From Phaeosaccion multiseriatum (Eukaryota > Protista > Ochrophyta, other classes), in assembly GCA_965112735.1 (NCBI GenBank), contig OZ218950.1:620001-684000 (forward strand): a DNA stretch of 64,000 nucleotides, given 5' to 3'. Made by a program: the position numbers and the translations under genes. The notes beneath the pieces are model-generated. The model did no database searches. It worked only from the letters and a program-made list of their open reading frames with translations, and was not told where the DNA came from. Below are positions 9,609 to 64,000 of the stretch, piece after piece. Position 1 is the stretch's first letter. Every line of letters starts with the position of its first letter.

Positions 9609-10123
9609 TCTCACAACTCCCCGCCCTTCAAACAATCCTCCTTGCACCTCCTTCGCGTTTCTTCAAAAGAATACAAGTGCTCCCCCGTGGACAAGAAGGC
9701 TCTTACAGTCCTTCCTTCACTGTCTGTCGTGGTGAAGAGGAGAAGAATGCTTATGTGCCAAGTTGAAGGCCTCCAAGCCCGCGCATCGGCTAAGACAAAG
9801 GAGGATAGATCCCCTTGCGTCCAGCCCAAGTCTTGGAGAAGAGGAGGAGAGAAGGTTGTAAAAGAGGATAATCAAAAGAGGGAAGAGAGGGGAAGATATT
9901 TCTTAAGGGATGGGAGGGAGAGAAAGAAGGATGTGTGAAGGCCGGGGCCCAGGAACATCTAGTTTCAGTTTCAGCTTAGTGGCTCTGGACGAGGAGCCCA
10001 GCTCGGAGTCCCACAGAGCTCCCCCCAGCAAACACTCTCCGAGGGGTTCGGGGCTTTACGAGGCCCAAAGACTGAGGACGATACAACGCTTGCCTTGTGT
10101 CAAGAACAAGAGCTTCCTCACAA

Positions 10124-11137: not shown

Positions 11138-12508
11138 CTAAATCCCAAGTCCCGAGGTATCAGCAGCAGGGCCCTCCACACGCACGCACGCTCGCAGCGC
11201 CTTCCGTCCGCGACTCTTCTTCTCACTCGCCGTCACCATACTCTCCTCCAGCACCGCCCACTCCTCCTTCAGCTTGTCGTCATCATCATCCCCCCCTGCT
11301 CCTCCTGAGCGATAGCGGCGGTAGGCAGACACAAAGCCTCGGATCGTGCTCTCCAGGCTCGCCCCCTTCCTCTTTGTGCGCACAGCGAGGTGGGGCAGCA
11401 GCAACACTTTACTCCGGCCCACAGCCACCACCACGCCATTCGATAGCTCCCTGTCCCGACGGCCGCAGAAGGCCGTGACAGCATCAGCCCCGCCATCTTC
11501 CAGCCCTCTCCACAGGCCACAGGGCACTTGAATCTCGTCCCCGACATGAAGCCCCAGCCCCGCAAGCAAACCCACCCCATTCCCATCCTCCAGTGCCTCC
11601 TTCCTCTCCTCCCCTCCCCCAGCCATTGAAGGGGCGCATTTCGCCCTCTTCCTTCCTCTCCCATTGATGTCCGTCGCAGCTCCTCGCTTGGGCACAGGCG
11701 TACAACGGGCAATCTCCTCCTTCTGCTCCGCTCCCTCCCTCTTCACTCGTGCATGCCTCTTGCACATCCCCCCTTGCTTCCGTTGCTTTTCGCACCCCTC
11801 AACAGTACACCTCTTCCGTACCACCACCGCTCCGTGAGCCACGCAAAGTCCTCCTCGGACCCGTACCTTATCGCACCCCTCAACAGTACACCTCTTCCGC
11901 ACAGCCCCATGGGCCTGGCAAAGTCCTCCCTGCCTCGGGTGCTTGTCGCACCCCTCAACAGTACACCTCTTCACCACAGCTCCATGGCCCTGGCAAAGTC
12001 CCCCCTGCTTCGGGTGCTTGTCGCACCCCTCAACAGTACACCTCTTCACCACAGCCCCGTGCTCAAGGCAAAGTCCTCCTTGGATCCGTACCTTATCGCA
12101 CCCCTCAACAGTACACCTCTTCACCACAGCTCCATGGGCCTGGCAAAGTCCTCCCTGTTGCGACTGCTTCTCGCACCCCTCAATAGTACAACTCTTCACC
12201 ACAGCCCCGTGGGCCTGGCAAAGTCCTCCCTGTCGCGACTGCTTCTCGCACCCCTCAACAGTACACCTCTTCACTACGGCTCCATGGCCCTGGCAAAGTC
12301 CTCCCTGTTGCGACTGCTTCTCGCACCCCTCAACAGTACACCTTTTCGGTACCACCACAGCCCCGTGGGCCTGGCAAAGTCCTCCTTGCTGCCGATGCTT
12401 CTCGCACCCCTCAACATTACACCTCTTCCGCACAGCTCCATGGCCCTGGCAAAGTCCTCCCTGCTTCGGGTGCTTGTCGCAACCCTCAACAGTACACCTC
12501 TTCCGCAT
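11138..12508 (-). CDS. WRKY19-like zinc-finger repeat protein, copy 3 (10 repeats, intact)
   Basis: Open ORF with windows HPK, HRQ, QSQ, QSR, QSQ, VRI, HPK, HPR, VRV, QRK. Confidence 0.88.
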   Translation of the reverse strand: MRKRCTVEGCDKHPKQGGLCQGHGAVRKRCNVEGCEKHRQQGGLCQAHGAVVVPKRCTVEGCEKQSQQGGLCQGHGAVVKRCTVEGCEKQSRQGGLCQAHGAVVKSCTIEGCEKQSQQGGLCQAHGAVVKRCTVEGCDKVRIQGGLCLEHGAVVKRCTVEGCDKHPKQGGLCQGHGAVVKRCTVEGCDKHPRQGGLCQAHGAVRKRCTVEGCDKVRVRGGLCVAHGAVVVRKRCTVEGCEKQRKQGGMCKRHARVKREGAEQKEEIARCTPVPKRGAATDINGRGRKRAKCAPSMAGGGEERKEALEDGNGVGLLAGLGLHVGDEIQVPCGLWRGLEDGGADAVTAFCGRRDRELSNGVVVAVGRSKVLLLPHLAVRTKRKGASLESTIRGFVSAYRRYRSGGAGGDDDDDKLKEEWAVLEESMVTASEKKSRGRKALRACVRVEGPAADTSGLGI

Positions 12509-13010
12509 TCTCACAACTCCGCGCCCTTCAAACAATCCTCCTTGCATCTCCTTCGCGTTTCTTCAAAAGAATACAAGTGCTCCCCCGTGGACAAGAAGGC
12601 TCTTACAGCCCTTCCTTCACTGTCTGTCGTGGTCAAGAGAAGAGAGAGAAGTCGAATGCTTATGTGCCAAGTTCAAGGCCTCCAACCCGCGCATCGGCTG
12701 AAGACAAAGGAGGATAGATCCCCTTGCGTCCAGCCCAAGTCTTGGAGAAGAGGAGGAGAGAAGGTTGTAAAAGAGGGAAGAGAGGGGAATTAAGGGATGG
12801 GAGGGAGAGAAAGAAGGATGTGTGAAGGGCGGGGCCCAGGAACATCTAGTTTCAGTTTCAGCGTATTGGATCTGGACGAGGAGCCCAGCTCGGAGTCCCA
12901 CAGAGCTCCCCCCCGCAAACACTCTCCGAGGGGTTCGGGGCTTTACGAGGCCCAAAGACTGAGGACGATACAACGCTTGCCTTGTGTCAAGAACAAGAGC
13001 TTCCTCACAA

Positions 13011-18421: not shown

Positions 18422-18503
18422 TCAACTGGAATTCCAGTCCCTCAACTCGTCCCTCCGGCTCGCCTCTCCCCCCCATCACCTTCCCCTCCCCCCCACTATC
18501 CCA

Positions 18504-20260: not shown

Positions 20261-20966
20261 AGTCAACACGCCTGAGCTCCCACCCCAATGCCCCCTGCAC
20301 CAGGCCCCTCCCCAGTACCCACTGTACCAAGGCCCACAGACCGCACCCCAATGCTCCCTGCACCATGCCACGCCCCAGTACCGACGAGTTAGAGAGGAGG
20401 ACGAGTCTTTGCGCACCCGGCACCGCCCCTCTGACGGTGCCGCGCACACTCCAACCCACCCGATTCTCTATCTCCCCGCGGTAGGTACCAATGGGTACCC
20501 CTCGAATATCTCCCCACTGAGTCCACCAGTCCCCCGGGGCGGGTGGGTGGGAGAAGATTCACCGCGTTAGCTGCTTTCAGGGCAGCGACTCCTATCCTCA
20601 CTTCCACTCCACCGCACCACACCACGGACCTCTTATGCCACACCCTCAAGTTTCTAAACCTCCCCCTCCCTTGCCAGGCCGTGAAAAGTCGTTTTCCCAC
20701 CGGGGTACGAAAACTCCCCTTTCACGGCCTTCTCGGTCGGGTACCTCCCCCCATTCACAAATGCCCACACAATAGTATTACAATTAGGTAAAAGGGGGTA
20801 CTTGCCAGTCGGAAGTTAGAGAGGAGGACGAGTCTTTGCGCACCCGGCACCGCCCCTCTGACGGTGCCGCGCACACTCCAACTCAACTGGAATTCCAGTC
20901 CCTCAACTCGTCCCTCCGACTCGCCTCTCCCCCCCCATCACCTTCCCCTCCCCCCCCACTATCCCA

Positions 20967-22049
20967 TTACACTCCGCATCCCCAGTCTTTGTCTGCCCCC
21001 GCCTCCCTCACCCCCAAACCCTGGTCCCACGTCCTCGCCCCCCCTACTGTAACGATATCCCCCCTTCGCGCTAGTATCTCCGACACCCTATCCGACTCCT
21101 GCACGTTCGGCCGGATGTACCGCATGAACGCCTTGCTCTTCCACCTCCCTTCCACTTGAATCGTCGAATCTGACGCCCCCCTTGCGGCTAGTGTCGTAGC
21201 ACCCCCAACTCGAAAGGAATGCAGCGCATATCCTGATGGATCAAGTCCCAAGGCCGACACCACCCTCCTCATCTCCTTCGAGACCTCCGTCCGTTTGAAG
21301 CACGTCCAGCCGCCCTTACCCCACCACGCTGACAGTGGCAGCGTGCCCGTGACCTGACCCCTCCCTTCGCCTTCGTCCTGTAAGTCCAAGACGCGCTGAA
21401 TGAGCTCCAATGCCCCTTTTCCCTTGTCCACTCGCCTCCTACACAGCACCGCTCCCACCCTCATCTGATCGCCCTTTGACCCTTTGAATCGTATCTCCAC
21501 CCTGTCCGCCATGTGCCGGTACTTCAACGTGACTCTGCAGCTCCCCTTGAAGAAGTGGAGATCCTCTCGCGTCAGACCAAAAGTTGGATGGACCTTCCCC
21601 GTTTCATCGTAACCCCACAGTTCACTGGCACGTAGCAGCAAGAAGTAGGATAGACCCATTCCACACCACATTGCCTCCCCTCTCACCCCCACACCCACAT
21701 TCCCCTCCACTGACCTCTTCCGTACTACCACAGCTCCATGGGCCTGGCAAAGTCCTCCTTGGACCCGTACCTTATCGCACCCCTCAACAGTACACCTCTT
21801 CCGTACCACCACCGCTCCGTGCCCTTTGCAAAGTCCTACCCGTTGCGACTCCTTCTCGCACCCCTCAACAGTACACCTCTTCCGCACAGCTCCATGGGCC
21901 TGGCAAAGTCCTCCTTGGACCCGTACCTTATCGCACCCCTCAACAGTACACCTCTTCACGACAGCCCCGTGGGCCACGCAAAGTCCTCCTTGGACCCGAT
22001 GCTTGTCGTACACCAGCCAGCAGACAGCGAGACCATCAGCACACAGCAT
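20967..22049 (-). CDS. Chimeric ORF: zinc-finger repeats fused in frame to a complete tyrosine-recombinase catalytic domain
   Basis: Continuous ORF ...AHGAVVVRKR|SVEGNVG...LLRASEL...SKGDQ...YALHSFRVGG...GRWKS...RYIRP. In-frame ATG at 22049. Expression is not shown. Confidence 0.55.
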   Translation of the reverse strand: MLCADGLAVCWLVYDKHRVQGGLCVAHGAVVKRCTVEGCDKVRVQGGLCQAHGAVRKRCTVEGCEKESQRVGLCKGHGAVVVRKRCTVEGCDKVRVQGGLCQAHGAVVVRKRSVEGNVGVGVRGEAMWCGMGLSYFLLLRASELWGYDETGKVHPTFGLTREDLHFFKGSCRVTLKYRHMADRVEIRFKGSKGDQMRVGAVLCRRRVDKGKGALELIQRVLDLQDEGEGRGQVTGTLPLSAWWGKGGWTCFKRTEVSKEMRRVVSALGLDPSGYALHSFRVGGATTLAARGASDSTIQVEGRWKSKAFMRYIRPNVQESDRVSEILARRGDIVTVGGARTWDQGLGVREAGADKDWGCGV

Positions 22050-22321
22050 AGCAACCACAGTTAGTCACGCCTTGTCACCCGCACCACCCACAGTAGGCTA
22101 GTTCACATATCACCTCCACCACCTCACTCCTTCCCACACCCCTTCATCTCCTCCTCCCCCCTTCACTCCCTTCCCATTCCCCATTATCCTCTACTCTACC
22201 ACCCTTACCATCCTCTTCCCCTCCACCTCACGCTCCATCAATACCACACATACACGCATCTACACATGGTTACAACTTACCTCGAGCGCTCCAATACTGA
22301 GCCCATAAGCTCTAATATACA
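22009..22321 (+). mobile_element. Severely 5'-truncated CRE-like non-LTR copy (3' UTR only), TSD TGTCG
   Basis: Identical to ~59986-60298. tgtcg at 22004-22008 and 22322-22326. Confidence 0.92.
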
Positions 22322-32000: not shown

Positions 32001-33789
32001 TCATCTTCACCTCTGCGCAAGTCTTGCACGGCGCCCTCTTCCCGCACAGTGTCACGCCCTCCAGCTTGGCCTGTCGCCGTAGTTCTTGATCGTTGCGGTG
32101 GCCCTTCTTGCAGTGGTAAGTCATGTAATCACTCCACTGCTCCGTGGCCTCCTCGATCTTGAATTGTAGCATGTCAAGCCCCAGCTCTGGGTCCTGCGTC
32201 GTGTGCACCGTCTCTGGTGCGTCTGCTGAGGGGCCGAAATAGACTGGCTTCCCCGCTGGCCTTGCGCTCCCCCCAGTAGGTCTGAGAGGTTCTTCTCTGC
32301 AAAAATGCAGAAAGGTACGTCTGGCGACACCACTACCTCCAGCCCCTTCAGTCCTCTTTTGCCGTCGTTGGAGACGTAGCTGATGTTCACCTTCCCTTTG
32401 CCCATTATCTGCGCGTGCGACTTGCCGTCTGCGAGTTGCACTAAACTCTGATGAGCGCAGAAATCGTACAGTCCATCCAAGTTGGGCCACACATTGAGCG
32501 CCGATCCGCTGTCTGCGAGCCCCTGCCGTGTGCCATCCGCCCCCGACTTCAGCTTGGACATATGGTAGAGAGAATGGCCGCTCCCCCTCTCCTGTAGCGT
32601 CCACGGAATGCTGAAAATGGCGCTGGTGGAGCCTTCCACATGCTCGCCATCTTTCTTCTTCCTGCTGTTTGGGCAGTCTGCACGCTGGTGCCCCGGCTTG
32701 TGGCAGTTGAAACACAGCTCCTCCTTGGACGGACACGTCGTCCGCATGTGCCCCTTTCTCCCACACCTGTAACAGCGTGTGTTGGACCGATCTTTCTCTC
32801 CTGCCCCTGTGGTGGTCTGTCTACCCCCCTGCTGGTTGCTGTGTCTTCTGCCTTTGCTGGTAAATGTGGAAAAGGCCCCGCTCAAGGTCCTCTCCCGCCT
32901 CCCTCGCTTGCGCTTGGAGGTCACTGTCAAACCGCTGCACTTGCTGTTTGAACCGATTAAACTCGTCCTCTGTCTCTACCGAATGACCGTGCACTTGGCC
33001 GAACGACTCCCATCTCTGCCCCATACGCCTGAGGAACTTGTCCTTGATGATGGAGTAGGACATAGGAAGCTGCTCCTCCGTCATCAACACGTTGAGTTGG
33101 AGAAACTTGTTGAGGTAGGCAAGTCCCGTCTCCCCCACCCCTGGCCTCAGATCGTGCATCTCGGAGGTGAGAAACTCTTGTCGCTGTGACTGCGTGCTCC
33201 CCATCACTGCCTCCTTGATTGCCTGCATCAATAGTACCAGGTCCACTTGGAACCGCGCTGTGCGAGTGCGTTCTTCTATGGCATCCCTCATGTCCGAGGG
33301 AATGGCCTCCAAAATCTTGAGGCCCGTCTGTTGGTACAGACTGAACGTCAGGGCATACTTAGAGTCCCGGGAGGCGTCGTCTGCGTTGGGGATCTTATCA
33401 CTATCCACCAAGAATGCCTTTGCCCCCATCCCCCCTATGTGATCCGTGACCGCTCGCATAAATCGCAAGAGAGGCATCACTCCCTCCGATTCCAACTTCT
33501 TGTCAAACTCATTGTTCTTCGGCTTGAACGTGAGTTCTAGCAGCTGCTGTGCTGTACTCCCCCCCCCGCTGGGGGTCACTGTTCCTCCGACTGAGGAGAT
33601 AGTGACTGGTGCTGCGGCCGCTGCCGTGGGCACTCCTTGCTGTGTGATGTGTTTGGCCAACGCTGCCGCTATCATCTTTTCCATCATTTCAGCCATCTGC
33701 TGCTGTGCGTCTCCTTCTATCGCGGAACTCGCACTGACGGGCGCCGCTGCGTCCGCCTTTTCAACGCCTTCTTCTTCCGCGCCTGGCAT
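29008..33789 (-). CDS. Copia gag-pol polyprotein, broken by two frameshifts (~32830-32900 and ~32275) and an in-frame TGA at 30652-30654
   Basis: ORF pieces 32821-33789 (gag), 32121-32930 (knuckles, protease), 30652-32766 (integrase) and 29008-30615 (RT-RH). The last two are in the same frame. Confidence 0.88.
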
Positions 33790-38975: not shown

Positions 38976-39890
38976 CTAAATCCCAAGTCCCGAGCTATCA
39001 GCAGCAGGGCCCTCCACACGCACGCACGCTCGCAGCGCCTTCCGTCCGCGCCTCTTATTCTCACTCGCCGTCACCATGCTCTCCTCCAGCACCGTCCACT
39101 CCTCCTTCAGCTTGTCGTCATCATCATCCTCCCCTACTTCTCCTGAGCGATAGCGGTGGTAGGCAGACACAAAGCCTCGGATCGTGCTCTCCAGGCTCGC
39201 CCCCTTCCTCTTTGTGCGCACAGCGAGGTGGGGCAGCAGCAACACTTTACTCCGGCCCACAGCCACCACCACGCCATTCGATAGCTCCCTGCCCCGACGG
39301 CCGCAGAAGGCCGTGGCAGCATCAGCCCCGCCATCTTCCAGCCCTCTCCACAGGTCGCAGGGCAGTTGAATCTCGTCCCAGACATGAAGCCCCAGCCCCG
39401 CAAGCAAACCCACCCCATTCCCATCCTCCAGTGCCTCCTTCCTCTCCTCCCCTCCCCCAGGCATTGAAGGGGCGCATTTTGCCCTCTTGCTTCCTCTCTC
39501 ATTGATGTCCTCCGCAGCTCCTCGCTTGGGCACAGGCGTACACGGGGCAATATCCTCCTTCTGCTCCGCTCCCTCCCTCTTCACTCGTGCATGCCTCTTG
39601 CACATCCCACCTTGCTTCCGTTGCTTCTCGCACCCCTCAACAGTACACCTTTTCGGTACCACCACAGCCCCGTGGGCCACGCAAAGTCCTCCCTGTCGCG
39701 ACTGCTTCTCGCACCCCTCAACAGTACACCCCTTCACCACAGCCCCGTGGGCCTGGCAAAGTCCTCCCTGTCGCGACTGCTTCTCGCACCCCTCAACATT
39801 ACACCTCTTCCGCACAGCTCCATGGGCCTGGCAAAGTCCTCCCTGCTTCGGGTACTTGTCGCACCCCTCAACAGTACATCTCTTCCGCAT
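38976..39890 (-). CDS. WRKY19-like zinc-finger repeat protein, copy 6 (4 repeats, intact)
   Basis: Windows YPK, QSR, QSR, QRK and the full C-terminal domain. Confidence 0.88.
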   Translation of the reverse strand: MRKRCTVEGCDKYPKQGGLCQAHGAVRKRCNVEGCEKQSRQGGLCQAHGAVVKGCTVEGCEKQSRQGGLCVAHGAVVVPKRCTVEGCEKQRKQGGMCKRHARVKREGAEQKEDIAPCTPVPKRGAAEDINERGSKRAKCAPSMPGGGEERKEALEDGNGVGLLAGLGLHVWDEIQLPCDLWRGLEDGGADAATAFCGRRGRELSNGVVVAVGRSKVLLLPHLAVRTKRKGASLESTIRGFVSAYHRYRSGEVGEDDDDDKLKEEWTVLEESMVTASENKRRGRKALRACVRVEGPAADSSGLGI

Positions 39891-40327
39891 TCTCACAACT
39901 CCGCGCCCTTCAAACAATCCTCCTTGCACCTCCTTCGCGTTTCTTCAAAAGAATACAAGTGCTCCCCCGTGGACAAGAAGGCTCTTAAAGCCCTTCCTTC
40001 ACTGTCTGTCGTGGTCAAGAGAAGAGAGAGAAGTCGAATGCTTATGTGCCAAGTTCAAGGCCTCCAACCCGCGCATCGGCTGAAGACAAAGGAGGATAGA
40101 TCCCCTTGCGTCCAGCCCAAGTCTTGGAGAAGAGGAGGAGAGAAGGTTGTAAAAGAGGATAATCAAAAGAGGGAAGAGAGGGGAAGATATTTCTTAAGGG
40201 ATGGGAGGGAGAGAAACAAAAAAAAATGAAAGGCGCTTTATATTTTTCAATTTCAGCGTATTGGATCTGGACGAGGAGCCCAGCTCGGAGTCCCACAGAG
40301 CTCCCCCCCGCAAACACTCTCCGAGGG

Positions 40328-40569
40328 TCGACCCCTGACACACTATCCGCTATCGCCGGCGCCAGCCGGCGCGCTATCCGCTATCGGCCGGCGCCAGCGG
40401 GCACGCTATCCGCTATCGGCCGGCGCCAGCCGGCGCGCTATCCGCTATCGGCCGGCGCCAGCCGGCACGCTATCCGCTATCGGCCGGCGCCAGCCGGCAC
40501 GCTATCCGCTATTGGCCGCGGCCGATAGCGCGCTATCGAGAATGTGGGCGATAGTGTGTCAGGGGTCGA
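40328..40569. mobile_element. MITE type 2 (19-bp TIR, 6-bp TSD CGAGGG, 32-bp internal repeats)
   Basis: tcgacccctgacacactat / atagtgtgtcaggggtcga. cgaggg on both sides. The empty site tccgaggggttcg is present in other units (e.g. ~4291). Confidence 0.93.
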
Positions 40570-46781: not shown

Positions 46782-47921
46782 CTAAATCCCAAGTCCCGAG
46801 GTATCAGCAGCAGGGCCCTCCACACGCACGCACGCTCGCAGCGCCTTCCGTCCGCGACTCTTCTTCTCACTCGCCGTCACCATGCTCTCCTCCAGCACCG
46901 TCCACTCCTCCTTCAGCTTGTCGTCATCATCATCCTTCCCTACTTCTCCTGAGCGATAGCGGTGGTAGGCAGACACAAAGCCTCGGATCGTGCTCTCCAG
47001 GCTCGCCCCCTTCCTCTTTGTGCGCACAGCGAGGTGGGGCAGCAGCAACACTTTACTCCGGCCCACAGCCACCACCACGCCATTCGATAGCTCCCTGCCC
47101 CGACGGCCGCAGAAGGCCGTGGCAGCATCAGCCCCGCCATCTTCCAGCCCTCTCCACAGGTCACACGGCAGTTGAATCTCGTCCCCGACATGAAGCCCCA
47201 GCCCCGCAAGCAAACCCACCCCATTCCCATCCTCCAGTGCCTCCTTCCTCTCCTCCCCTCCCCCAGGCATTGAAGGGGCGCATTTTGCCCTCTTGCTTCC
47301 TCTCCCATTGATGTCCTCCGCAGCTCCTCGCTTGGGCACAGGCGTACAACGGGCAATCTCCTCCTTCTGCTCCGCTCCCTCCCTCTTCACTCGTGCATGC
47401 CTCTTGCACATCCCACCTTGCTGCCGTTGCTTGTCGCACCCCTCAACAGTACACCCCTTCACCACAGCCCCATGCCCAACGCAAAGTCCTCCCTGTTTCG
47501 ACTGCTTCTCGCACCCCTCAACAGTACACCTCTTCACCACAGCCCCGTGGGCCAGGCAAAGTCCTCCTTGGACCCGATGCTTGTCGCACCCCTCAACAGT
47601 ACACATCTTCCGCACAGCTCCATGGGCCTGGCAAAGTCCTCCCTGTCGCGACTGCTTGTCGCACCCCTCAACAGTACACCTTTTCGGTACCACCACAGCC
47701 CCGTGGGCCACGCAAAGTCCTCCCTGTCGCGACTGCTTCTCGCACCCCTCAACAGTACACCCCTTCACCACAGCCCCGTGGGCCTGGCAAAGTCCTCCCT
47801 GTCGCGACTGCTTCTCGCACCCCTCAACATTACACCTCTTCCGCACAGCTCCATGGGCCTGGCAAAGTCCTCCCTGCTTCGGGTACTTGTCGCACCCCTC
47901 AACAGTACATCTCTTCCGCAT
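46782..47921 (-). CDS. WRKY19-like zinc-finger repeat protein, copy 7 (7 repeats, intact)
   Basis: Windows YPK, QSR, QSR, QSR, HRV, QSK, QRQ. Confidence 0.88.
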   Translation of the reverse strand: MRKRCTVEGCDKYPKQGGLCQAHGAVRKRCNVEGCEKQSRQGGLCQAHGAVVKGCTVEGCEKQSRQGGLCVAHGAVVVPKRCTVEGCDKQSRQGGLCQAHGAVRKMCTVEGCDKHRVQGGLCLAHGAVVKRCTVEGCEKQSKQGGLCVGHGAVVKGCTVEGCDKQRQQGGMCKRHARVKREGAEQKEEIARCTPVPKRGAAEDINGRGSKRAKCAPSMPGGGEERKEALEDGNGVGLLAGLGLHVGDEIQLPCDLWRGLEDGGADAATAFCGRRGRELSNGVVVAVGRSKVLLLPHLAVRTKRKGASLESTIRGFVSAYHRYRSGEVGKDDDDDKLKEEWTVLEESMVTASEKKSRGRKALRACVRVEGPAADTSGLGI

Positions 47922-48358
47922 TCTCACAACTCCGCGCCCTTCAAACAATCCTCCTTGCACCTCCTTCGCGCTTCTTCAAAAGAATACAAGTGCTCCCCCG
48001 TGGACAAGAAGGCTCTTACAGCCCTTCCTTCACTGTCTGTCGTGGTCAAGAGAAGAGAGAGAAGTCGAATGCTTATGTGCCAAGTTCAAGGCCTCCAACC
48101 CGCGCATCGGCTGAAGACAAAGGAGGATAGATCCCCTTGCGTCCAGCCCAAGTCTTGGAGAAGAGGAGGAGAGAAGGTTGTAAAAGAGGATAATCAAAAG
48201 AGGGAAGAGAGGGGAAGATATTTCTTAAGGGATGGGAGGGAGAGAAACAAAAAAAAATGAAAGGCGCTTTATATTTTTCAATTTCAGCGTATTGGATCTG
48301 GACGAGGAGCCCAGCTCGGAGTCCCACAGAGCTCCCCCCCGCAAACACTCTCCGAGGG

Positions 48359-48543
48359 TCGACCCCTGACACACTATCCGCTATCCGCTATCGCCGGCGC
48401 CAGCCGGCGCGCTATCCGCTATCGGCCGGCGCCAGCCGGCACGCTATCCGCTATCGGCCGGCGCCAGCCGGCACGCTATCCGCTATTGGCCGCGGCCGAT
48501 AGCGCGCTATCGAGAATGTGGGCGATAGTGTGTCAGGGGTCGA
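48359..48543. mobile_element. MITE type 2, second copy at the orthologous site with fewer internal repeats
   Basis: Same TIRs and cgaggg TSD as 40328-40569; 185 bp versus 242 bp. Confidence 0.93.
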
Positions 48544-52740: not shown

Positions 52741-53552
52741 CTAAATCCCAAGTCCCGAGCTATCAGCAGCAGGGCCCTCCACACGCACGCACGCTCGCAG
52801 CGCCTTCCGTCCGCGCCTCTTCTTCTCACTCGCCGTCACCATGCTCTCCTCCAGCACCGCCCACTCCTCCTTCAGCTTGTCGCCATCATCATCTTCCCCT
52901 ACTTCTCCTGAGCGATAGCGGTGGTAGGCAGACACAAAGCCTCGGATCGTGCTCTCCAGGCTCGCCCCCTTCCTCTTTGTGCGCACAGCGAGGTGGGGCA
53001 GCAGCAACACTTTACTCCGGCCCACAGCCACCACCACGCCATTCGATAGCTCCCTGCCCCGACGGCCGCAGAAGGCCGTGGCAGCTTCAGCCCCGCCATC
53101 TTCCAGCCCTCTCCACAGGTCACACGGCAGTTGAATCTCGTCCTCGACATGAAGCCCCAGCCCCGAAAGCAAACCCACCCCATTCCCATCCTCCAGTGCC
53201 TCCTTCCTCTCCTCCCCTCCCCCAGGCATTGAAGGGGCGCATTTTGCCCTCTTGCTTCCTCTCCCATTGATGTCCTCCGCAGCTCCTCGCTTGGGCACAG
53301 GCGTACAACGGGCAATCTCCTCCTTCTGCTCCGCTCCCTCCCTCTTCACTCGTGCATGCCTCTTGCACATCCCATCTAGCTTCCGTTGCTTTTCGCACCC
53401 CTCAACAGTACACCTCTTCCGCACAGCTCCATGGGCCTGGCAAAGTCCTCCTTGGACCCGTACCTTATCGCACCCCTCAACAGTACACCTCTTCACCACC
53501 GCTCCGTGAGCCAGGCAAAGTCCTCCTTGGACCCGTACCTTATCGCACCCCT
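52741..53552 (-). pseudogene. Zinc-finger gene copy 8, 3' part, interrupted by CRE-like insertions
   Basis: C-terminal domain plus about 3 repeats. Further single repeats at 60299-60380 and 61329-61410. Confidence 0.88.
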
Positions 53553-56500
53553 AGCACCCCCCTTCTTTTTTTCTGCTTAAGACAGGGCCACCATGGAAGG
53601 GGACGACAGGGGGGCCACGCGGCCCCCCGGAGCCCAGGAGACACCAGCAAACCTCACAGCAACCCAGCAGGAGCCACCTATGAGCCGCGATCAGCAGCGG
53701 CTCGAAAGAAGGGAGAGACGGGCAGCGGCAGCAGCAATTCGCCAAACACCAGCACGGGAAGGCGTGCCCACCCCCATCACGGCTCCACCAGCGGCCGCAG
53801 CACCCCGCAACACCCTCCCGCAGGACCCACAGCTCCCACCAGCACTCACGGAACCCACAGCAACAGCAGCGGAAGCCCACCCCCAGCAGCAGCAACCACA
53901 ACCGATCTCAACGACACGGCAACAAACAGCACCAGCCGCCAGGAGATCTACCACGCCCGCCAGCGAGACAACAGGCCCTACAACAGCACCACCCCCCACA
54001 GCGACCAGCCCAGCACCCATGCAGCCAACCACGAGGCCAAGGGGACGAAGCAGGACCCCCCGAGCACGCAGCCCGGAAAGGCCAACCGCCACTTTCCGAG
54101 CCTCAGATCCAGCCCAAACCACCAACGCGTCAACTCACAGAAACGCACACGGGATCACAGAGCAAATCGTCTCCATCCTCCAAGACGAATACGAAGACAC
54201 CCACCTCACAGCCACGACCCCCATACGGCAACACCCGAACCTCTTCTTCAACGAACAAGCGCCAGCATCCGCCAGCCGACGCATCAGCGCTGAGTTCGCA
54301 AGCCTAAACCTCACCGCGACGGAACTGACCCACCACAACACGGCCGAGGCCATCGCCGACCTCGTACGACCACCCCCCACGACGCACGAGGAAGAGACAG
54401 CATCACTCGAAACAGACACGCATGGACACGCACCAACGACATGGAGCAACACCATACGCCACCAGCGCGACGCGGCGCTCCCGCCTACCAACTCGCACTT
54501 CTATATGCCCCTCCTCAGACAAGCTCTAAGGAGCGGAGGCCCCCCCACCACCCCCGGAAGACCACATGGGGGAGGAGATTACCCCCTTGGATGGCAACAG
54601 ATCGTAGAGGCCTATGCCCACACGCTCGCAGGCCAAGAGATCACCTCCAACGAGTTGGTCAACGACTACATCACCGCCTCACGACAGGAGGAACTCATCG
54701 CGGTATTACCCGACGTCCAAGCCATCGTTGAGCGCTACGGCCACGCCCTACGCGACCACACCAACAACACCACCACCTCCCCCTTCGCCAACACCATGGC
54801 CACACCGTGGTGGGCGCCGGGGCAAGCCCTCGCCCTACGCACGAGACAGGCCCCCCGGGGAACCGCACCAGGACCGCCACCACCCCCGCCCAAAGCGACG
54901 CAACCACACCCAGCCCACCAACACCGGAGGACAACCCCAACAACGCCCGAGTGTACCGAAGACACCCCGACAATGGAAACATTCAAGGGGGCATCCTCTG
55001 CAACTTTGGCGAATGCCACGACACCTTCGTCACGGTAGGCAACACAAGAGACCGCCTCATCAGGCACCAGTCGAGCCACCACCCGAACCGCGGCAGAGAG
55101 TGGGACCGATGGATGCGCGAACACCACCCCCAGGCCGCGTCAATCCTGTGGTACCGCGCCAACGGCCCACAGAGCGGACCACAGAATAATACGTACCAGC
55201 TCCGGGACTGCACAAGTGGATGCGGCAACCTGGCCCACCGAAACTCCGGCAGATCCTTCCTTACCCGCTTCCCGCAATCAGGCCTACGACAACCCCTATG
55301 CAACGCCTGCATACGAGCACACGAAGCCGCAAGCCTACCAGCACCGCCAACCATCCAACGAGCTCGAAGCATGCCCCCACCGACAAGAGCAGGTGGGACA
55401 GACACTACACGAGAGCACGACCAGGAGGGAGGAGGGAGAGGAGAGCGAGCGGGACACAGGGAGGGGGACGAGGAGACCGCGAAGGAAGAGTAGTAGCAGG
55501 GGGGGAAGAGGGCGAAAACAGCAGAGGCGGAGGAGAGCGCCCAGCACTGGCACGGGAAGCAGCGGCAGAAGGAGGGGAAGGGCAAGCAGCGGGAGGAGGT
55601 GACGAAGGAGAAGGAGGAGGCGACCCCACCAACAACGAGGAGCTACCCAACTGCCCGGTGTGTATGGAACCGCTCACTGGCCAAGCACAAGTCGCCATGC
55701 ACGAAGGCGAACATCACGTGCACAACCACTGCGCATTGGGAGTCATGAGCAGGTACCCCAACCGCAACGACCACCTCTGCCCCTACTGCCGCAACCCCTG
55801 CTACCGGCACACGATCGAGCAGGCCATCACAGCACAAGGAGGGAGAGCTATGGGCCGCGCAAGGGATCGCCTAGCGAGGGAGCGCAGAGAGTCGCATCAG
55901 CAGCACGCGCAGGCCAGCCAAGGGCGACGCCGCCAGTCCCAGCCACCCCCCACCACCCGACACACACCCCCACCCCAACCTACCGCCCCCCCAGCCCCGA
56001 TATGCTGCATATGCATGTCAGACGCGGACCCCCCTTTCATCGCACCAACCACGGAGTGGCCAGTACGCACCCGACGCTGCCAACACACCGTTCACCCCGC
56101 GTGCCTCCTTCACCACCTGAACGACCAAGCCACACTGAGGAGAGCCAACCAGCAGCCCGTCATACCACCAGGCAACCTCCCCTGCCCCGCGCAAGGCTGC
56201 ATGGCTGGCTACCAAGCTCAACGAGCCATCCCCGCCCTCAGGACCATCCTCACCCAAGGCAACGCAGCATCGGCCTACCAAGGCCCCCTCAACGACCTCG
56301 AGAACGCCTATCTAGGCCCAGACCCAAACGAGGACCCGTCGCGTACGGCAACGCCCCAGCACACGACAGCAACGGCCAGGCTCAACCCGTACCAACCCAC
56401 CACCCCCACGGGCAGAGGAGGAGGGCGAGGGCACGCGGAAGGAGGAGGAGGAGGAGGAGGAGGAGGAGCAATCGCAGCAGCGCCAAGTGGAGTAGAAGGA

Positions 56501-59500
56501 GGAAGAGGAGGACGAGGGAGGGGGAAGGAAACGGACAAGGAGCAGCAGCAGAGAGGGGACCTCAGAGAGAAAGGGCAGGGGGAGATAGCACACGCACGCA
56601 AGGAACCACAGCAGCAGCAGCGAGACGAGGGGGAGGAGGACGGAGCAGAGGCCAAGGAGGTAGCGGCGGGGACGGAGGGGACGGAGAAGGGCCAGCCAAC
56701 GACGATACACCCGAGGAAGGATGGCCCATGCAGCACCCAAACGTCCTCCGCCTAGGGGCCCTGGACCCGCAGGGTACCATCCTCTCAACACTCGTGTTTG
56801 AGACAGTAGCGCAGTGCAACCCCCGCCACGTCAGCTCGATTATCAGCTTACAGCAAAGAGCGCTCAACAACTGGAACAGGGCGCTGAGGGCCCACAAGAA
56901 CGGCCCCACCGACGCCACCCTCCACACCCTTCTGGCATGGGATGTCTTCCACCACCTCCTCCCTGCCATGCTCTTCTCTAAAGACGGAGCCTACAGCCGC
57001 CAGCAGCGGATACAGATGGTCCTCGACCTCGACATCGCCCCACTCGCACAAGCAGCGATAGCCACAGCACACGCACGCCGCCCACCACCCCCAGCACAGG
57101 CACAGACAGAGGAGCGACGGAGAGAAACCTGCGCCCACCTGCTCACCAAACCCGGAGGCCTGCACAAGGCCGCGGCGAGGCTCAGCACAAAGAGCAGAGA
57201 CGGCCACCTCCCTCCCACACACGAGACCTTTAGACGCCTCCAGCAAGCGCACGTCGACGAGAGCCTCGAAGAGATCAACACAGCAGCAGCAGCAGCCAGG
57301 GAGTACGCCAGAACCCAGGTGCAGGAGCACCCCGAGAATGGCAACGACGTCACCAGAGAGGAGATCAGCACAGCCATGCTGCTGACCTACCGGAGGGTCA
57401 ACTTCTGGAAGGGCCAAGGAGCAGACGGGCGCAGGGCGAGCCACGTCAAGTACCCCCGGACAGCCCCCAGGAGTACGCAATCGTGGAGGCTCTGACTGAC
57501 ACCTACGAGCTGCTCCGAACGGGGGACACTCCACTGCCTCCACAGCTCGCCAAACGGTGGTTCAGCACCAGCGCCGCAGCCCTCGGCGAGAAAGCGCGTC
57601 CTGTGACATCCCCCAACCTCTACCGCAGCCTCGTGGAGAGCTGTCACATGAAGCTCATCGCGGACAGGGTGGGCCCAGAGCTCAGAAGCGCAGGACAGCT
57701 AGCGGTAGCGGTCAGAGGCGGAGGGGAAACACACGCCGCAGCAGCCCAGCTAGCGCACGATGCCGGCAAAACCGTCGTGCTGCATGACATCACCAAGGCC
57801 TACACCCGCGTGTCGCGTGCCAGAGGCGTCCTAGCCTCAGGAGCACTCCCTACCATCGACCCAGCAGGCATCAACTACGCCATCGCCAGCCTCTCCCACG
57901 CCTCCGCCCACAACGCCCTCACACCAGACGGCACCCAGACCATCCACCAGAGCTCCGGAGTCAACCAAGGAGCACCAGAAGGGCCTCTCATGTTCGCAGC
58001 CGCCATCCACCCAGTGCTGAAAGTTCAGAACACAGCCGACACCGCAGCGAACCGCCCCACCATCTCCGCCTACGCAGACGACCTCATGGACCAGCTGGAA
58101 CCCGACGCACCCCTACAGACCTACGCCCCACGCCATGCCCATCTCCAAGCCCAATTCCGAGGCTTGGGCCTCGAGTTCAACGAGAGGAAAACGGTTTACC
58201 TCATGGGCAAAGGCAAGCAGCCAACACAGGCTGACAGGGACCACGCCCAACGGCAGGGCGCCACACTAGCCACCGAGGGTACCGTGGTAGCCGGCATCCC
58301 CGTCGGCACGGAGGAGTACATCGAAGAGTACCTCCGCAACATCCTCGGCCAAGAAGACCCCAGGGGCTACCTCCAACTCGCCAAACACTGCAGCGAGTGG
58401 GACAACACCCAGGCGGCCACCCTCGTCCTCCTCCAATGCCTCCCAGCCAGGCTCACACACCTGGCGAGAGCCATTGACCCCTCCATCTTCCGACGCGCCC
58501 TCGGCAGCAGGGCAGACCGCACCAACAGAGCGACAATGGCCCACATCATGCGACTCCCCGATGCCCCCCCTCTGGAGCAGGCCGCAGATGCACAAGAGGA
58601 GCCATGGACGGAGACACAGCGCCTACAAATGCATACGGCACGGCGCTTCGGCGGCCTCGGCCTCACCAGCCTCCACGACATCGCCCCAGCAGCATACCTT
58701 GGCAACAAGATGCTCACCCTCCCCCCCCTGCTCAGCCGCACCGCACGCCGGGAAGGCTCCCAAGAGAGCGCCCTACCGGACCAGCTGTTCACCAACGGAG
58801 CCCTCAAGAGCGTCGCCGACAGCGTCAACCTCCTGCACGAGGAGGGGGTCCCTGAGGCCCCCCTCATCCAAGCAGTGGGTCAGGCACAGTTCGACGAGGC
58901 CCGCTCACGCGTACTCGAGCCGCCTGACCACCAAGCCCAGGACACAGCGCGACGCAACGTGCGCAGGAGCCATCAGGCAGGCCGTCAACCGACCCACGGC
59001 GTCCAGAAGGCCCTCACCACCTTCATCCACAAACGCCGCCATGAGGAGCTGACGCAGAGCATCGCCACCATCGACGTCACACCGGCAGAGGCACAGAGGG
59101 GAGAGGAGACACAGGAAATGGCAACAGCCCGACTCCACTCACAGCGAGGAAGGGGCGCCATGGCCTTCCTCGGAGCGCTCCCCCACGGCCACAACACCAT
59201 GGCCCCCGCAGAATGGACCATGGCCCTTCGTCGCAACCTCGGTGTCAACACGCCATACGCGGACCCGCCCCCACCCTGCCTTGGCACAGGCTGCGCCCGC
59301 ACGGCAAGCACTACCCACGCCACCATCTGCCCCCGCACCGGCCTCCACAACCACACACACCACCTCCTCGTCAAGGCCTTCGGGAGGATGATGCACAGCG
59401 TGGGCATTGGAGGAGCACGTGTAGAGGACCAGACCTGCTTCGACGGCCCCACGGGCACCCGAGCAGGCCGAGACCTACGCATGGACCTGACCTATCCCGC

Positions 59501-60298
59501 AGGTAGCTTCCCGGGAGCGGACGCACCCCTGCGGAGAAACCTCCTCTGCGACATCACCGTCACCAACCCCACCGCCCCCACTCACGTGGGACGGGCCTCC
59601 ACCACGCCAGGCCACGCAGCAGCCGCCGCCGAAGAACGCAAGCGCACCCACTACCTGGGCAGTTTTCTGCCCGGGACTTCAACCCTGAAGTGCATTGCAA
59701 TCGAGACGTACGGCAGACTGGGCCACCAAACGGACGAGCTCATCGAGGCGATGGCCATCCACAAGGCATCAAGAGGGCTCGGCCCCGCAGCGGCGGCAGC
59801 CACGGGCCCCATCAAGGGCCTCCTGCGCCAACAACTGTCCCTCGCCCTTCAACGCGCCCTCTCACAGCGGGAGATCAGGTATGGCACCCTCCTTCGAGCC
59901 ACCATGACGCAGCACGAAGCAGCAGAAACCCTCGACTGGGGGCTCATGGGAGCCATCGACGGAGCGGCCGCCTGAGGAGCAGGAGTACACCAGCCAGCAG
60001 ACAGCGAGACCATCAGCACACAGCATAGCAACCACAGTTAGTCACGCCTTGTCACCCGCACCACCCACAGTAGGCTAGTTCACATATCACCTCCACCACC
60101 TCACTCCTTCCCACACCCCTTCATCTCCTCCTCCCCCCTTCACTCCCTTCCCATTCCCCATTATCCTCTACTCTACCACCCTTACCATCCTCTTCCCCTC
60201 CACCTCACGCTCCATCAATACCACACATACACGCATCTACACATGGTTACAACTTACCTCGAGCGCTCCAATACTGAGCCCATAAGCTCTAATATACA
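53553..60298 (+). mobile_element. Apparently full-length CRE-clade non-LTR retrotransposon with restriction-like endonuclease (RLE)
   Basis: RT motifs GQGADG, KARPV, QLAVAVRGG, HDITKAY, GVNQGAPEGP, YADD (58071), AGIPVG. A C-x4-C..H..C knuckle is followed by RMD...DITV...K...Y...ETYGRLG. Flanked by tcgcacccct (53543-53552 and 60301-60310). No poly(A) tail. Confidence 0.92.
53593..59975 (+). CDS. Single long ORF of the CRE-like element (C2H2 finger, two RING-H2-like fingers, RT, RLE), broken by about 4 frameshifts
   Basis: gccaccATGG start. Overlapping ORFs 53593-55038, 54807-55493, 55220-56755, 55660-57495 and 57483-59975. The shift at ~57455 is absent in the copy at 61551 (C6 instead of C5). 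Confidence 0.8.
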
Positions 60299-60380
60299 TC
60301 TCGCACCCCTCAACAGTACACCTCTTCACCACAGCTCCGTGGGCCTGGCAAAGTCCTCCTTGGATCCGATGCTTGTCGCA

Positions 60381-61328
60381 CCACACACACCACCTCCTCG
60401 TCAAGGCCTTCGGGAGGATGATGCACAGCGTGGGCATTGGAGGAGCACGTGTAGAGGACCAGACCTGCTTCGACGGCCCCACGGGCACCCGAGCAGGCCG
60501 AGACCTACGCATGGACCTGACCTATCCCGCAGGTAGCTTCCCGGGAGCGGACGCACCCCTGCGGAGAAACCTCCTCTGCGACATCACCGTCACCAACCCC
60601 ACCGCCCCCACTCACGTGGGACGGGCCTCCACCACGCCAGGCCACGCAGCAGCCGCCGCCGAAGAACGCAAGCGCACCCACTACCTGGGCAGTTTTCTGC
60701 CCGGGACTTCAACCCTGAAGTGCATTGCAATCGAGACGTACGGCAGACTGGGCCACCAAACGGACGAGCTCATCGAGGCGATGGCCATCCACAAGGCATC
60801 AAGAGGGCTCGGCCCCGCAGCGGCGGCAGCCACGGGCCCCATCAAGGGCCTCCTGCGCCAACAACTGTCCCTCGCCCTTCAACGCGCCCTCTCACAGCGG
60901 GAGATCAGGTATGGCACCCTCCTTCGAGCCACCATGACGCAGCACGAAGCAGCAGAAACCCTCGACTGGGGGCTCATGGGAGCCATCGACGGAGCGGCCG
61001 CCTGAGGAGCAGGAGTACACCAGCCAGCAGACAGCGAGACCATCAGCACACAGCATAGCAACCACAGTTAGTCACGCCTTGTCACCCGCACCACCCACAG
61101 TAGGCTAGTTCACATATCACCTCCACCACCTCACTCCTTCCCACACCCCTTCATCTCCTCCTCCCCCCTTCACTCCCTTCCCATTCCCCATTATCCTCTA
61201 CTCTACCACCCTTACCATCCTCTTCCCCTCCACCTCACGCTCCATCAATACCACACATACACGCATCTACACATGGTTACAACTTACCTCGAGCGCTCCA
61301 ATACTGAGCCCATAAGCTCTAATATACA
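60381..61328 (+). mobile_element. CRE-like 3' segment (RLE + 3' UTR)
   Basis: Identical to 59351-60298. Confidence 0.92.
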
Positions 61329-61412
61329 TCTCGCACCCCTCAACAGTACACCTCTTCACCACAGCTCCGTGGGCCTGGCAAAGTCCTCCTTGGATCCGAT
61401 GCTTGTCGCACC

Positions 61413-64000
61413 ACACAGGTGCAGGAGCACCCCGAGAATGGCAACGACGTCACCAGAGAGGAGATCAGCACAGCCATGCTGCTGACCTACCGGAGGGTCA
61501 ACTTCTGGAAGGGCCAAGGAGCAGACGGGCGCAGGGCGAGCCACGTCAAGTACCCCCCGGACAGCCCCCAGGAGTACGCAATCGTGGAGGCTCTGACTGA
61601 CACCTACGAGCTGCTCCGAACGGGGGACACTCCACTGCCTCCACAGCTCGCCAAACGGTGGTTCAGCACCAGCGCCGCAGCCCTCGGCGAGAAAGCGCGT
61701 CCTGTGACATCCCCCAACCTCTACCGCAGCCTCGTGGAGAGCTGTCACATGAAGCTCATCGCGGACAGGGTGGGCCCAGAGCTCAGAAGCGCAGGACAGC
61801 TAGCGGTAGCGGTCAGAGGCGGAGGGGAAACACACGCCGCAGCAGCCCAGCTAGCGCACGATGCCGGCAAAACCGTCGTGCTGCATGACATCACCAAGGC
61901 CTACACCCGCGTGTCGCGTGCCAGAGGCGTCCTAGCCTCAGGAGCACTCCCTACCATCGACCCAGCAGGCATCAACTACGCCATCGCCAGCCTCTCCCAC
62001 GCCTCCGCCCACAACGCCCTCACACCAGACGGCACCCAGACCATCCACCAGAGCTCCGGAGTCAACCAAGGAGCACCAGAAGGGCCTCTCATGTTCGCAG
62101 CCGCCATCCACCCAGTGCTGAAAGTTCAGAACACAGCCGACACCGCAGCGAACCGCCCCACCATCTCCGCCTACGCAGACGACCTCATGGACCAGCTGGA
62201 ACCCGACGCACCCCTACAGACCTACGCCCCACGCCATGCCCATCTCCAAGCCCAATTCCGAGGCTTGGGCCTCGAGTTCAACGAGAGGAAAACGGTTTAC
62301 CTCATGGGCAAAGGCAAGCAGCCAACACAGGCTGACAGGGACCACGCCCAACGGCAGGGCGCCACACTTGCCACCGAGGGTACCGTGGTAGCCGGCATCC
62401 CCGTCGGCACGGAGGAGTACATCGAAGAGTACCTCCGCAACATCCTCGGCCAAGAAGACCCCAGGGGCTACCTCCAACTCGCCAAACACTGCAGCGAGTG
62501 GGACAACACCCAGGCGGCCACCCTCGTCCTCCTCCAATGCCTCCCAGCCAGGCTCACACACCTGGCGAGAGCCATTGACCCCTCCATCTTCCGACGCGCC
62601 CTCGGCAGCAGGGCAGACCGCACCAACAGAGCGACAATGGCCCACATCATGCGACTCCCCGATGCCCCCCTCTGGAGCAGGCCGCAGATGCACAAGAGGA
62701 GCCATGGACGGAGACACAGCGCCTACAAATGCATACGGCACGGCGCTTCGGCGGCCTCGGCCTCACCAGCCTCCACGACATCGCCCCAGCAGCATACCTT
62801 GGCAACAAGATGCTCACCCTCCCCCCTGCTCAGCCGCACCGCACGCCGGGAAGGCTCCCAAGAGAGCGCCCTACCGGACCAGCTGTTCACCAACGGAGCC
62901 CTCAAGAGCGTCGCCGACAGCGTCAACCTCCTGCACGAGGAGGGGGTCCCTGAGGCCCCCCTCATCCAAGCAGTGGGTCAGGCACAGTTCGACGAGGCCC
63001 GCTCACGCGTACTCGAGCCGCCTGACCACCAAGCCCAGGACACAGCGCGACGCAACGTGCGCAGGAGCCATCAGGCAGGCCGTCAACCGACCCACGGCGT
63101 CCAGAAGGCCCTCACCACCTTCATCCACAAACGCCGCCATGAGGAGCTGACGCAGAGCATCGCCACCATCGACGTCACACCGGCAGAGGCACAGAGGGGA
63201 GAGGAGACACAGGAAATGGCAACAGCCCGACTCCACTCACAGCGAGGAAGGGGCGCCATGGCCTTCCTCGGAGCGCTCCCCCACGGCCACAACACCATGG
63301 CCCCCGCAGAATGGACCATGGCCCTTCGTCGCAACCTCGGTGTCAACACGCCATACGCGGACCCGCCCCCACCCTGCCTTGGCACAGGCTGCGCCCGCAC
63401 GGCAAGCACTACCCACGCCACCATCTGCCCCCGCACCGGCCTCCACAACCACACACACCACCTCCTCGTCAAGGCCTTCGGGAGGATGATGCACAGCGTG
63501 GGCATTGGAGGAGCACGTGTAGAGGACCAGACCTGCTTCGACGGCCCCACGGGCACCCGAGCAGGCCGAGACCTACGCATGGACCTGACCTATCCCGCAG
63601 GTAGCTTCCCGGGAGCGGACGCACCCCTGCGGAGAAACCTCCTCTGCGACATCACCGTCACCAACCCCACCGCCCCCACTCACGTGGGACGGGCCTCCAC
63701 CACGCCAGGCCACGCAGCAGCCGCCGCCGAAGAACGCAAGCGCACCCACTACCTGGGCAGTTTTCTGCCCGGGACTTCAACCCTGAAGTGCATTGCAATC
63801 GAGACGTACGGCAGACTGGGCCACCAAACGGACGAGCTCATCGAGGCGATGGCCATCCACAAGGCATCAAGAGGGCTCGGCCCCGCAGCGGCGGCAGCCA
63901 CGGGCCCCATCAAGGGCCTCCTGCGCCAACAACTGTCCCTCGCCCTTCAACGCGCCCTCTCACAGCGGGAGATCAGGTATGGCACCCTCCTTCGAGCCAC
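61413..64000 (+). mobile_element. 5'-truncated CRE-like copy (RT + RLE), runs off the window
   Basis: Matches from ~57316 onward. The 5' junction follows gcttgtcgcacc. Confidence 0.93.

Follow-up and report, generated by a model that had tools for sequence, protein, structure and literature searches.

The window analysed here is a stretch of 64,000 nucleotides from the genome of Phaeosaccion multiseriatum (G000:C1:620001-684000; the genome measures 67 Mb in 22 contigs at ~59% GC). It consists of a tandem array of 6-8-kb units, 90-96% identical to one another, and each unit carries one gene of the Zf_WRKY19 zinc-finger family on the minus strand. Copies of a retrotransposon that lacks long terminal repeats (LTRs; a non-LTR element) are present in the array. 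Exactly four of them, A, B, C and D, were found by direct reading and by BLAST of copy A against the window, all on the plus strand, in agreement with the original observation that no insertion lies elsewhere in the array. These copies very probably belong to a young retrotransposon with two open reading frames (ORFs) and an R2-like architecture, which is site-specific for the finger codons of Zf_WRKY19 genes and is probably still active.

The host repeats match the Pfam family Zf_WRKY19 (PF24906) with E-values of 5.6e-53 to 2.4e-59, at 7-10 repeats per ORF; genome-wide, at least 150 scored matches to the family were obtained (909 candidates). Read on the plus strand, the 75-bp repeat is the antisense of a 25-amino-acid unit, C-x2-H-G-A-V-x-K-x-C-T-V-E-G-C-(D/E)-K-x5-G-G-L. 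The 3' end of the element is always joined to this repeat at the same phosphodiester bond; on the element strand, T-N-T-C-R-C-A-C-C-C-C-T follows it directly. The host coding strand reads 5'-GAGGGGTG(C/T)GA(C/G)A^AG at the junction, which interrupts the Lys codon belonging to the E-G-C-(D/E)-K core of the 25-amino-acid repeat; the earlier placement of the junction within the Lys codon of G-C-(D/E)-K agrees with the reverse complement, which reads ...GAG GGG TGC GA(C/G) A^AG. Direct reading of the three 3' ends visible in the window, at 22321, 60298 and 61328, reconfirmed that they share their end sequence and the repeat position: all are ...TAATATACA followed by T[G/C]TCGCACCCCTC.

The 5' junctions had been placed in the target motif, a few nucleotides past the 3' junction, and partial target copies do lie upstream of A, B, C and D. 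A partial target motif precedes every 5' end in the window and constitutes a target-site duplication of 5-12 nt. Copy B starts at 60380 after tgtcgc(acc) and copy C at ~61413 after tgtcgcacc; at the 5' junction of copy D (22008) the upstream target copy is tgtcg, of which the final g is possibly element sequence. Every copy in the window is antisense to the host ORF, and the orientation noted originally holds for all copies. The 12-mer target occurs 52 times in the window, each time on the plus strand, and three of these sites are occupied at the 5' side. For three 3' ends to hit 12-mer positions by chance among 128,000 strand-positions, the probability is ~7e-11.

The same junction was followed through the whole genome. 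The last 150 nt of the element are found in >40 near-identical genomic copies, and a pattern search with the terminal 14-mer and 21 nt of flank returned 113 matches. About 8 of these look unrelated (flanks starting with C or G), and ~105 are true element 3' ends. At least 10 nt of T-N-T-C-R-C-A-C-C-C-C-T follow the 3' end in ~88 of the ~105. Unrelated flanks are therefore not the majority in this tabulation, and the original proposal, that the element inserts site-specifically into a zinc-finger gene family's coding repeat, is upheld. The filled motif spans three or four repeat subfamilies, namely TCTCGCACCCCTCAACAGTAC on C1, TCTCACACCCCTCCACAGTAC on C8, TTTCACACCCCTCGACAGAAC on C13 and a few on C2. 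The exact 18-mer target is present at 317 sites genome-wide, of which, by our own count, ~49 (15%) carry an element end. An older subfamily with the 3' end TAATATAAA (ending TATAAA) is 87-92% identical to copy A, and its 3' ends are mostly followed by the same T-N-T-C-R-C... motif; some copies, including those at C4:855955 and C4:2128018, have no target motif after the 3' end. Since the TATAAA subfamily shares the junction, the specificity has persisted through at least one turnover of subfamilies.

Off-target copies are rare and occupy T-C-T-C-R-C look-alike sites. The bases that follow the 3' end in these copies belong to the target duplication; they were therefore in the target before insertion and were not brought by the RNA. 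As the look-alike bases pre-existed in the targets, the first nick is fixed directly 5' of T-C-T-C-R-C, and ~6-8 target bases are enough for insertion at low frequency. The target duplications, 5-12 nt long, all start at the same T and finish 5-12 nt further on, and thus the second-strand cut or the 5' joining is loose. Truncation at the 5' end is frequent. The 5' joints show microhomology at B and D, and extra bases at A (agcacccccc) and at an off-target copy on C5 (CCCC). In other full-length copies 3-4 C precede TTCTTTTTTT at the 5' end. The extra bases of copy A may have been carried over from the flank of a donor copy or added in 5' joining. Because the extra 5' bases look like donor-flank target, transcripts may start a few bases upstream of the element.

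The target was also examined as host coding sequence. In 37 cleanly spaced repeat units of the window (e.g. 11767-12503), the zinc ligands and the G, E and K positions are all invariant and codons 4-7 vary at their third positions, while the target lies in codons 11-18 (CTVEGC[DE]K), in which even third positions hardly vary. The invariant H-G-A-V residues thus vary at third positions, unlike codons 11-16 (C-T-V-E-G-C). The variable repeat positions are 2, 3, 8, 10, 17 and 19-21. As judged from these units, the element target is the most DNA-constant stretch of the repeat. The dispersed long-ORF Zf_WRKY19 genes have varied codons, the 12-mer is rare in them (3 sites in 8 genes), and all of these sites are empty.

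The coordinates of the element, its copies and the host genes are collected in the table. The ends of the element are not repeated, i.e. there are no LTRs, and the flanks carry just the 5-12-nt target duplications. The hallmarks of target-primed reverse transcription are present: a fixed 3' end, variable 5' truncation and a target-site duplication. In run X2, moreover, the 3' half of the element has ~10-fold the depth of the 5' half, a contig-based depth that is indicative only. The B and D copies are 100% and C is 99.8% identical to A, ORF2 is intact in another copy, and contigs of public runs contain the element in two samples from two studies, all of which points to a young element. In copy A, ORF2 lies in three pieces in different frames. 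Compared with contigs of public runs, the frame breaks of copy A are single-base run-length differences at 54882, 56519 and 57452; the C-run break near 57452 is found neither in copy C nor in the read contigs. In a natural copy on C13, ORF2 is open without interruption over 1,745 codons, which include the RING-like part, the reverse transcriptase (RT) and the restriction-like endonuclease (RLE), and this ORF2 shares ~330 nt with the end of ORF1, in the -1 frame. Broken frames were searched in pieces or read from natural copies.

No AP-type (apurinic/apyrimidinic) endonuclease (Exo_endo_phos) was matched in any ORF segment at E<=1 in Pfam, and RNase H was not detected in the ORFs. Neither a promoter nor a ribozyme was identified in the 5' untranslated region (UTR), and an Rfam search of 53000-61500 gave no ribozyme (including the hepatitis delta virus (HDV)-like type) and no other family. 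Folding of the final 120 nt of the 3' UTR gave no significant structure (z -1.6). A comparison of ORF1 with a distant relative's upstream ORF detected no similarity. RING-like modules are unusual for the protein of a non-LTR retrotransposon; they were also seen in a C13 copy (L046:3085-5784, minus strand), and four distant relatives share two invariant cysteine columns in the first module. A C2H2-like pattern, C-x4-C-x16-H-x3-H, was noticed in the ORF1/ORF2 overlap, in the ORF2 frame and before its first ATG (L046:5440-5540, minus strand); as it lies upstream of the first ATG, it would be translated only via frameshifting.

Features of the element, its copies and the host genes. Positions are those of the window unless a contig (C) is named.
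Feature	Position	Strand	Remarks
Copy A, full-length element, ~6.74 kb	53563..60298	+	short 5' UTR, ORF1, ORF2, and 3' UTR ending TAATATACA without poly(A)
Upstream target copy tatcgcacccct of copy A, one arm of the target-site duplication	53541..53552	+	same 12-mer class after the 3' end, from 60299
Ten extra bases agcacccccc at the copy A 5' junction	53553..53562	+	resemble the CACCCC part of the target
5' UTR, ~30 nt (TTCTTTTTTT CTGCTTAAGACAGGGCCACC)	53563-53592	+	near-perfect Kozak context at its end
ORF1 as in copy A, 481 amino acids	53593..55038	+	no Pfam family
ORF2 N-terminal part, two RING-like zinc modules	55220..56755	+	Pfam zf-RING_2, E 1.9e-6; out of frame with the remaining ORF2 in copy A
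ORF2 N-terminal extension, RING-like modules to RT	56690..57495	+	conserved in distant relatives
RT core with YADD	57684..58205	+	Pfam RVT_1, E 2.2e-7; D199 and D200 invariant; folds like R2 and LINE-1 RTs
CCHC zinc knuckle C-x4-C-x7-H-x3-C, upstream of the nuclease	59277..59330	+	C599 invariant; C604, H612 and C616 in at least 90% of 14 sequences
RLE (PD-(D/E)xK-type), predicted	59424..59654	+	E648, D668 (RMDL), D690 (DITV), K720 and Y724 are invariant columns
3' UTR, pyrimidine- and A-rich, G-poor	59976..60298	+	fixed end ...GCTCTAATATACA
81-bp zinc-finger repeat unit separating A and B, starting with target tctcgcacccct	60299..60379	+	same sequence as the unit at 61329-61409
Copy B, 5'-truncated, 949 bp	60380..61328	+	100% identity with the tail of A
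Copy C, 5'-truncated	from ~61413 past 64000	+	99.8% identity with A; end at C1:684396
Copy D, 314-bp 3' fragment	22008..22321	+	100% identity with A; sits in another zinc-finger array; target duplication tgtcg
Uninterrupted host gene, 469 amino acids, ten 25-amino-acid Zf_WRKY19 repeats, each with an empty target	11138..12547	-	PF24906, E 2.4e-59
3' remainder of the host gene cut by copy A: Zf_WRKY19 repeats and conserved C-terminal tail	52741..53499	-	
Six paralogues with open tails	8613-9647, 11138-12547, 27630-28619, 38976-39929, 46782-47960, 52741-53499	-	
Off-target copy	C11		TCTCGCTG on both flanks
Off-target copy	C5		flanked by T(A/C)TCACACAT
Off-target copy	C13		in a (CA)n run reading TCACACAC
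Off-target full-length copy	C5		perfect 12-bp duplication TCTCACACAATA; inserted beside an older 18-bp fragment
Older-subfamily copies	C4:4785461-4785591, C13:1603520-1605482, C3:1463383, C14:3048084, C5:95193-102375, C8:1525249, C1:452668		motif often in degraded repeat remnants

Relatives of ORF2 were sought by several routes. An exhaustive HMMER search gave 876 relatives, all of them unnamed metagenome or transcriptome proteins, the best with 29-34% identity from the RT to the C-terminus. A word-indexed protein search returned one weak match with the single ORF and seven with a profile of 14 sequences; two of the seven are 'unnamed protein product' entries from Closterium and the others bear no informative name. 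A cluster look-up of the ten best relatives gave no informative names, the ESM Atlas features were just 'hypothetical protein, RVT_1' clusters, and a metagenome scan with the single protein found no relative. No zinc-finger motif was present in the flanks of the contigs of three distant relatives (L051-L053). In the 14-sequence alignment (24-30% identity), YADD, C599/C604/H612/C616, H626, E648, D668, D690, K720 and Y724 are invariant or nearly so, and these conserved columns are, in the alignment, the CCHC and PD-(D/E)xK pattern of RLEs.

An AlphaFold (AF2) model of the protein reached a predicted local distance difference test (pLDDT) score of 80 and a predicted template modelling (pTM) score of 0.81. 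The seven best PDB matches of the model are all R2 proteins (Foldseek E 1e-12 to 1e-7 over ~800 alignment columns). A second structural alignment gave Z 15-18 over 560-610 residues, with residues 42-810 of the model matching R2 494-1169 through the C-terminal nuclease (Z 18.4); matches confined to the RT reach at most Z 14, clearly below the R2 proteins. The prediction of an RLE-bearing element is thus supported both by the invariant CCHC, D, D and K of the alignment and by a full-length structural match to R2 proteins. A single-sequence search barely picks up R2 (E 0.17).

Taken with the R2 analogy, the junctions are consistent with the following mechanism. The ORF2 protein would recognise a DNA core of roughly 8-12 bp and would nick the host-coding strand at the fixed site. 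Synthesis of cDNA would then be primed directly on the 3' end of the RNA (...UAAUAUACA), with no poly(A) and no homology to the target, and the other strand would be cut at a variable distance of 5-12 nt. The target would be the stretch of the repeat whose DNA varies least, and as tandem gene clusters hold hundreds of copies of it, insertions would destroy single paralogues while the family persists.

Other explanations of the junction pattern were weighed against this one. It is extremely improbable that the pattern arose with no endonuclease specificity, from a small number of ancestral insertions (or just one) multiplied among the zinc-finger arrays by gene conversion or by duplication, segmental or tandem. 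Duplication does occur at these loci, where the host genes themselves lie in tandem 6-8-kb units of 90-96% identity. Together with two 81-bp units of identical sequence, copies B and C make up a higher-order repeat of 4,098 bp that occurs at least 3 times (C1:680149-693544, from window position 60149); it holds truncated copies of 949 bp and 2,985 bp, each followed by the identical 81-bp zinc-finger unit, and some same-site copies are therefore segmental duplicates. A few further junction pairs have common flanks (C1:180065 and C1:197611; C8:1587860 and C8:1731607). The originally proposed independence of the insertions in the window accordingly stands in part: B and C are separate events with distinct truncation points, and both lie within the duplicated 4,098-bp unit. 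Genome-wide, the 65 junctions with a 100-nt flank fall into 56 distinct flank clusters (at <=5 mismatches), and among the truncated copies, which measure 33 to 949 bp, at least 25 different lengths occur, each accompanied by a target duplication of its own. With so many flanks, truncation points and duplications, segmental duplication cannot account for the pattern, and a single duplicated insertion is not its origin. Moreover, subfamilies of the repeat on four contigs have the same junction although they differ from one another along the whole unit, and the off-target copies stand in unrelated DNA at look-alike cores. Head-to-tail tandems of the element with only 10-12 nt of duplicated target between them are common (e.g. 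C8:2181763, C8:1571974, C1:692589). Random or regionally biased insertion, with selection leaving survivors just in the redundant zinc-finger arrays, is scarcely probable either. The dispersed long-ORF genes are empty even at the exact 12-mer, and selection or context therefore matters too; yet ~88 junctions at one bond of a 75-bp unit in a single orientation are beyond the reach of selection, copies that are 99-100% identical have left little time for purging, and the off-target copies likewise begin at T-C-T-C-R-C.

Base pairing between RNA and target has been proposed for some R2 and NeSL elements, and the site could likewise be chosen here by pairing of the element RNA, or of a read-through transcript, and not by protein-DNA recognition. 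The target-like bases before the 5' end of copy A (CACCCC...) and of the off-target full-length copy (CCCC) suggest that transcripts can include a short piece of flanking target. We consider this very unlikely as the basis of site choice: the element 3' end (...GCTCTAATATACA) does not resemble the bases upstream of the nick (...CCGCTGCT), from which protein-DNA recognition is inferred instead of RNA pairing, and the target-like bases after the 3' end of off-target copies are part of the duplication and not RNA-borne. A further reading accepts the element as described and takes the host 'genes' as decaying or selfish repeats, so that the target is effectively a minisatellite, like the microsatellite targets of RLE elements. 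It is unlikely. In its favour, six paralogues of the window have a ratio of nonsynonymous to synonymous substitution (dN/dS) of ~1 or higher in their tails outside the repeats, occupancy is very high at ~15% of exact sites, and the clusters hold other transposons (a copia-type pol at 29008-32766 and an integrase-like chimera at 20967-22058). Against decay, all six tails (6/6) are open over 210 codons and free of stops and indels, the zinc ligands and the G, E and K residues are invariant in 37 units in which third positions of codons 4-7 vary, the repeats belong to a curated Pfam family that is also present in long dispersed ORFs of the genome, and 1-6 synonymous substitutions are too few for a meaningful dN/dS.

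Several points weigh against the preferred reading, a site-specific element in protein-coding finger genes. The function of these host paralogues as protein genes is putative: pairwise dN/dS in the tails is 0.8-2.7, on just 1-6 synonymous differences, and with so few differences the values carry little meaning; they could reflect relaxed or diversifying selection, or too little data. By sequence, the RT core is about equally close to LINE-1 and R2, and an R2-like N-terminal CCHH/Myb DNA-binding module was not detected by Pfam. The nicking, the target-primed reverse transcription and the DNA-binding domain are inferred from the R2 analogy. The three homopolymer frame breaks of copy A may be real or may be assembly errors. 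Among the public runs no RNA run was identified that bears on transcription, start site or current activity. At 53550, run X2 shows a loose end of 255 nt that was considered as a possible second element at the site and rejected, being the interior of another repeat (also at window 18626 and 21089) with no junction.

Some other features of the region were noted. The copia-type LTR-retrotransposon pol in one array unit is on the minus strand (29008-32766; Pfam RVT_2 E 2e-42, with SH3_retrovirus). Another repeat family is duplicated in the window (18480-18720 and 20940-21180; also at G000:C15:285518) and adjoins the chimeric zinc-finger/integrase-like ORF at 20967-22058, which has a weak Phage_integrase match. 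Tandem repeats of 32 bp (CGCTATCCGCTATCGGCCGGCGCCAGCCGG-like) recur in array units at 597-828, 40339-40518 and 48379-48492, and similar sequence flanks an old, diverged element copy on C12 (79-86% identity).

Site-specific RLE retrotransposons are textbook 'safe-harbour' parasites and the basis of new gene-insertion tools. The element described here indicates that a multicopy protein-domain repeat can act as a retrotransposon harbour, and it establishes a direct link between a transposon and turnover in a large family of zinc-finger genes. The target variants, graded and numbering in the hundreds, together with the off-target look-alikes, offer a natural system for reading the recognition code (core T-C-T-C-R-C). 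Being far from R2 (~15% identity) and equipped with unusual RING-like modules, the element also widens the known protein diversity. It is conceivable, if unlikely, that the target is more than a safe haven: the element would home to a finger stretch (the zinc-ligand and E-G-C-(D/E)-K core) which the host cannot change without losing the fold, the specificity positions around it would diversify, as the variable repeat positions and the dN/dS of 1 or more in the tails might reflect, and the family would be a fast-evolving DNA-binding set, possibly of transposon repressors, in conflict with the element. In that case the element would knock out family members and drive their birth and death, and its RING-like and zinc modules would form a compact, re-aimable reader of 8-12 bp.

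Among known systems, R2 provides the best and sole full-length structural match to the element ORF2 (Z 18). Both have the RT, the CCHC knuckle and the C-terminal RLE in the same order, and both have a precise 3' junction, variable or truncated 5' junctions and a multicopy target. The R2 target is 28S ribosomal DNA, whereas the junctions examined here are all in zinc-finger repeats or look-alikes. R2 is a single ORF with one or more CCHH fingers and a Myb domain; the element has two ORFs, with RING-like modules in the N-terminus of ORF2. The sequence similarity is confined to the RT core, with ~15% identity, and the element differs further in its target duplications of 5-12 nt and in that no HDV-like ribozyme was found with Rfam. 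The CRE clade (CRE1/CRE2, SLACS and CZAR of trypanosomatids; MoTeR and Cnl1 of fungi) is of the RLE type with strict specificity for a tandem target, and SLACS and CZAR have two ORFs. The RLE type, the tandemly repeated target and the two ORFs are thus shared with the element, and the two-ORF layout is weakly suggestive of this clade. CRE-clade targets are spliced-leader RNA genes or telomeric repeats, in contrast to the EGC(D/E)K codons of Zf_WRKY19 repeats used here. Oomycete Utopia has an RNase H domain, and none was detected in the element.

The NeSL/Utopia, R4/Dong and HERO groups resemble the element in being RLE-type with sequence-specific insertion into multicopy sequences, and CRE, R2, R4 and NeSL are mostly target-specific (PMC4640811). 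The listed targets of site-specific RLE elements are RNA genes, other transposons, simple repeats and telomeres, with no protein-coding repeat among them (PMC4640811), and nothing further on targets of the protein-coding kind comes from recent reviews of R2 (PMC13580325, PMC13586686). Full-text literature searches gave no published account of this element or of its target (Repbase being outside their scope), in keeping with the earlier view that the specificity had not been described. The kind of system is known; the target class, the exactness within coding sequence and the divergent protein with RING-like modules set this element apart within it. Protein-coding multigene families as preferred landing sites of retroelements are described in trypanosomes, where the RHS family is a hot spot for ingi/RIME and L1Tc and MASP genes are a landing site of TcTREZO (PMC6967402, citing Bringaud 2002, 2006 and Souza 2007); in this respect both cases are like the element. 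The ingi and L1Tc elements have an AP-type endonuclease and, in the title of Bringaud et al. 2006 (cited in PMC6967402), a 'relative site-specificity'. Unlike them, the element described here is of the RLE type and is inserted at one exact bond of a domain repeat that occurs many times per gene, always in the antisense orientation.

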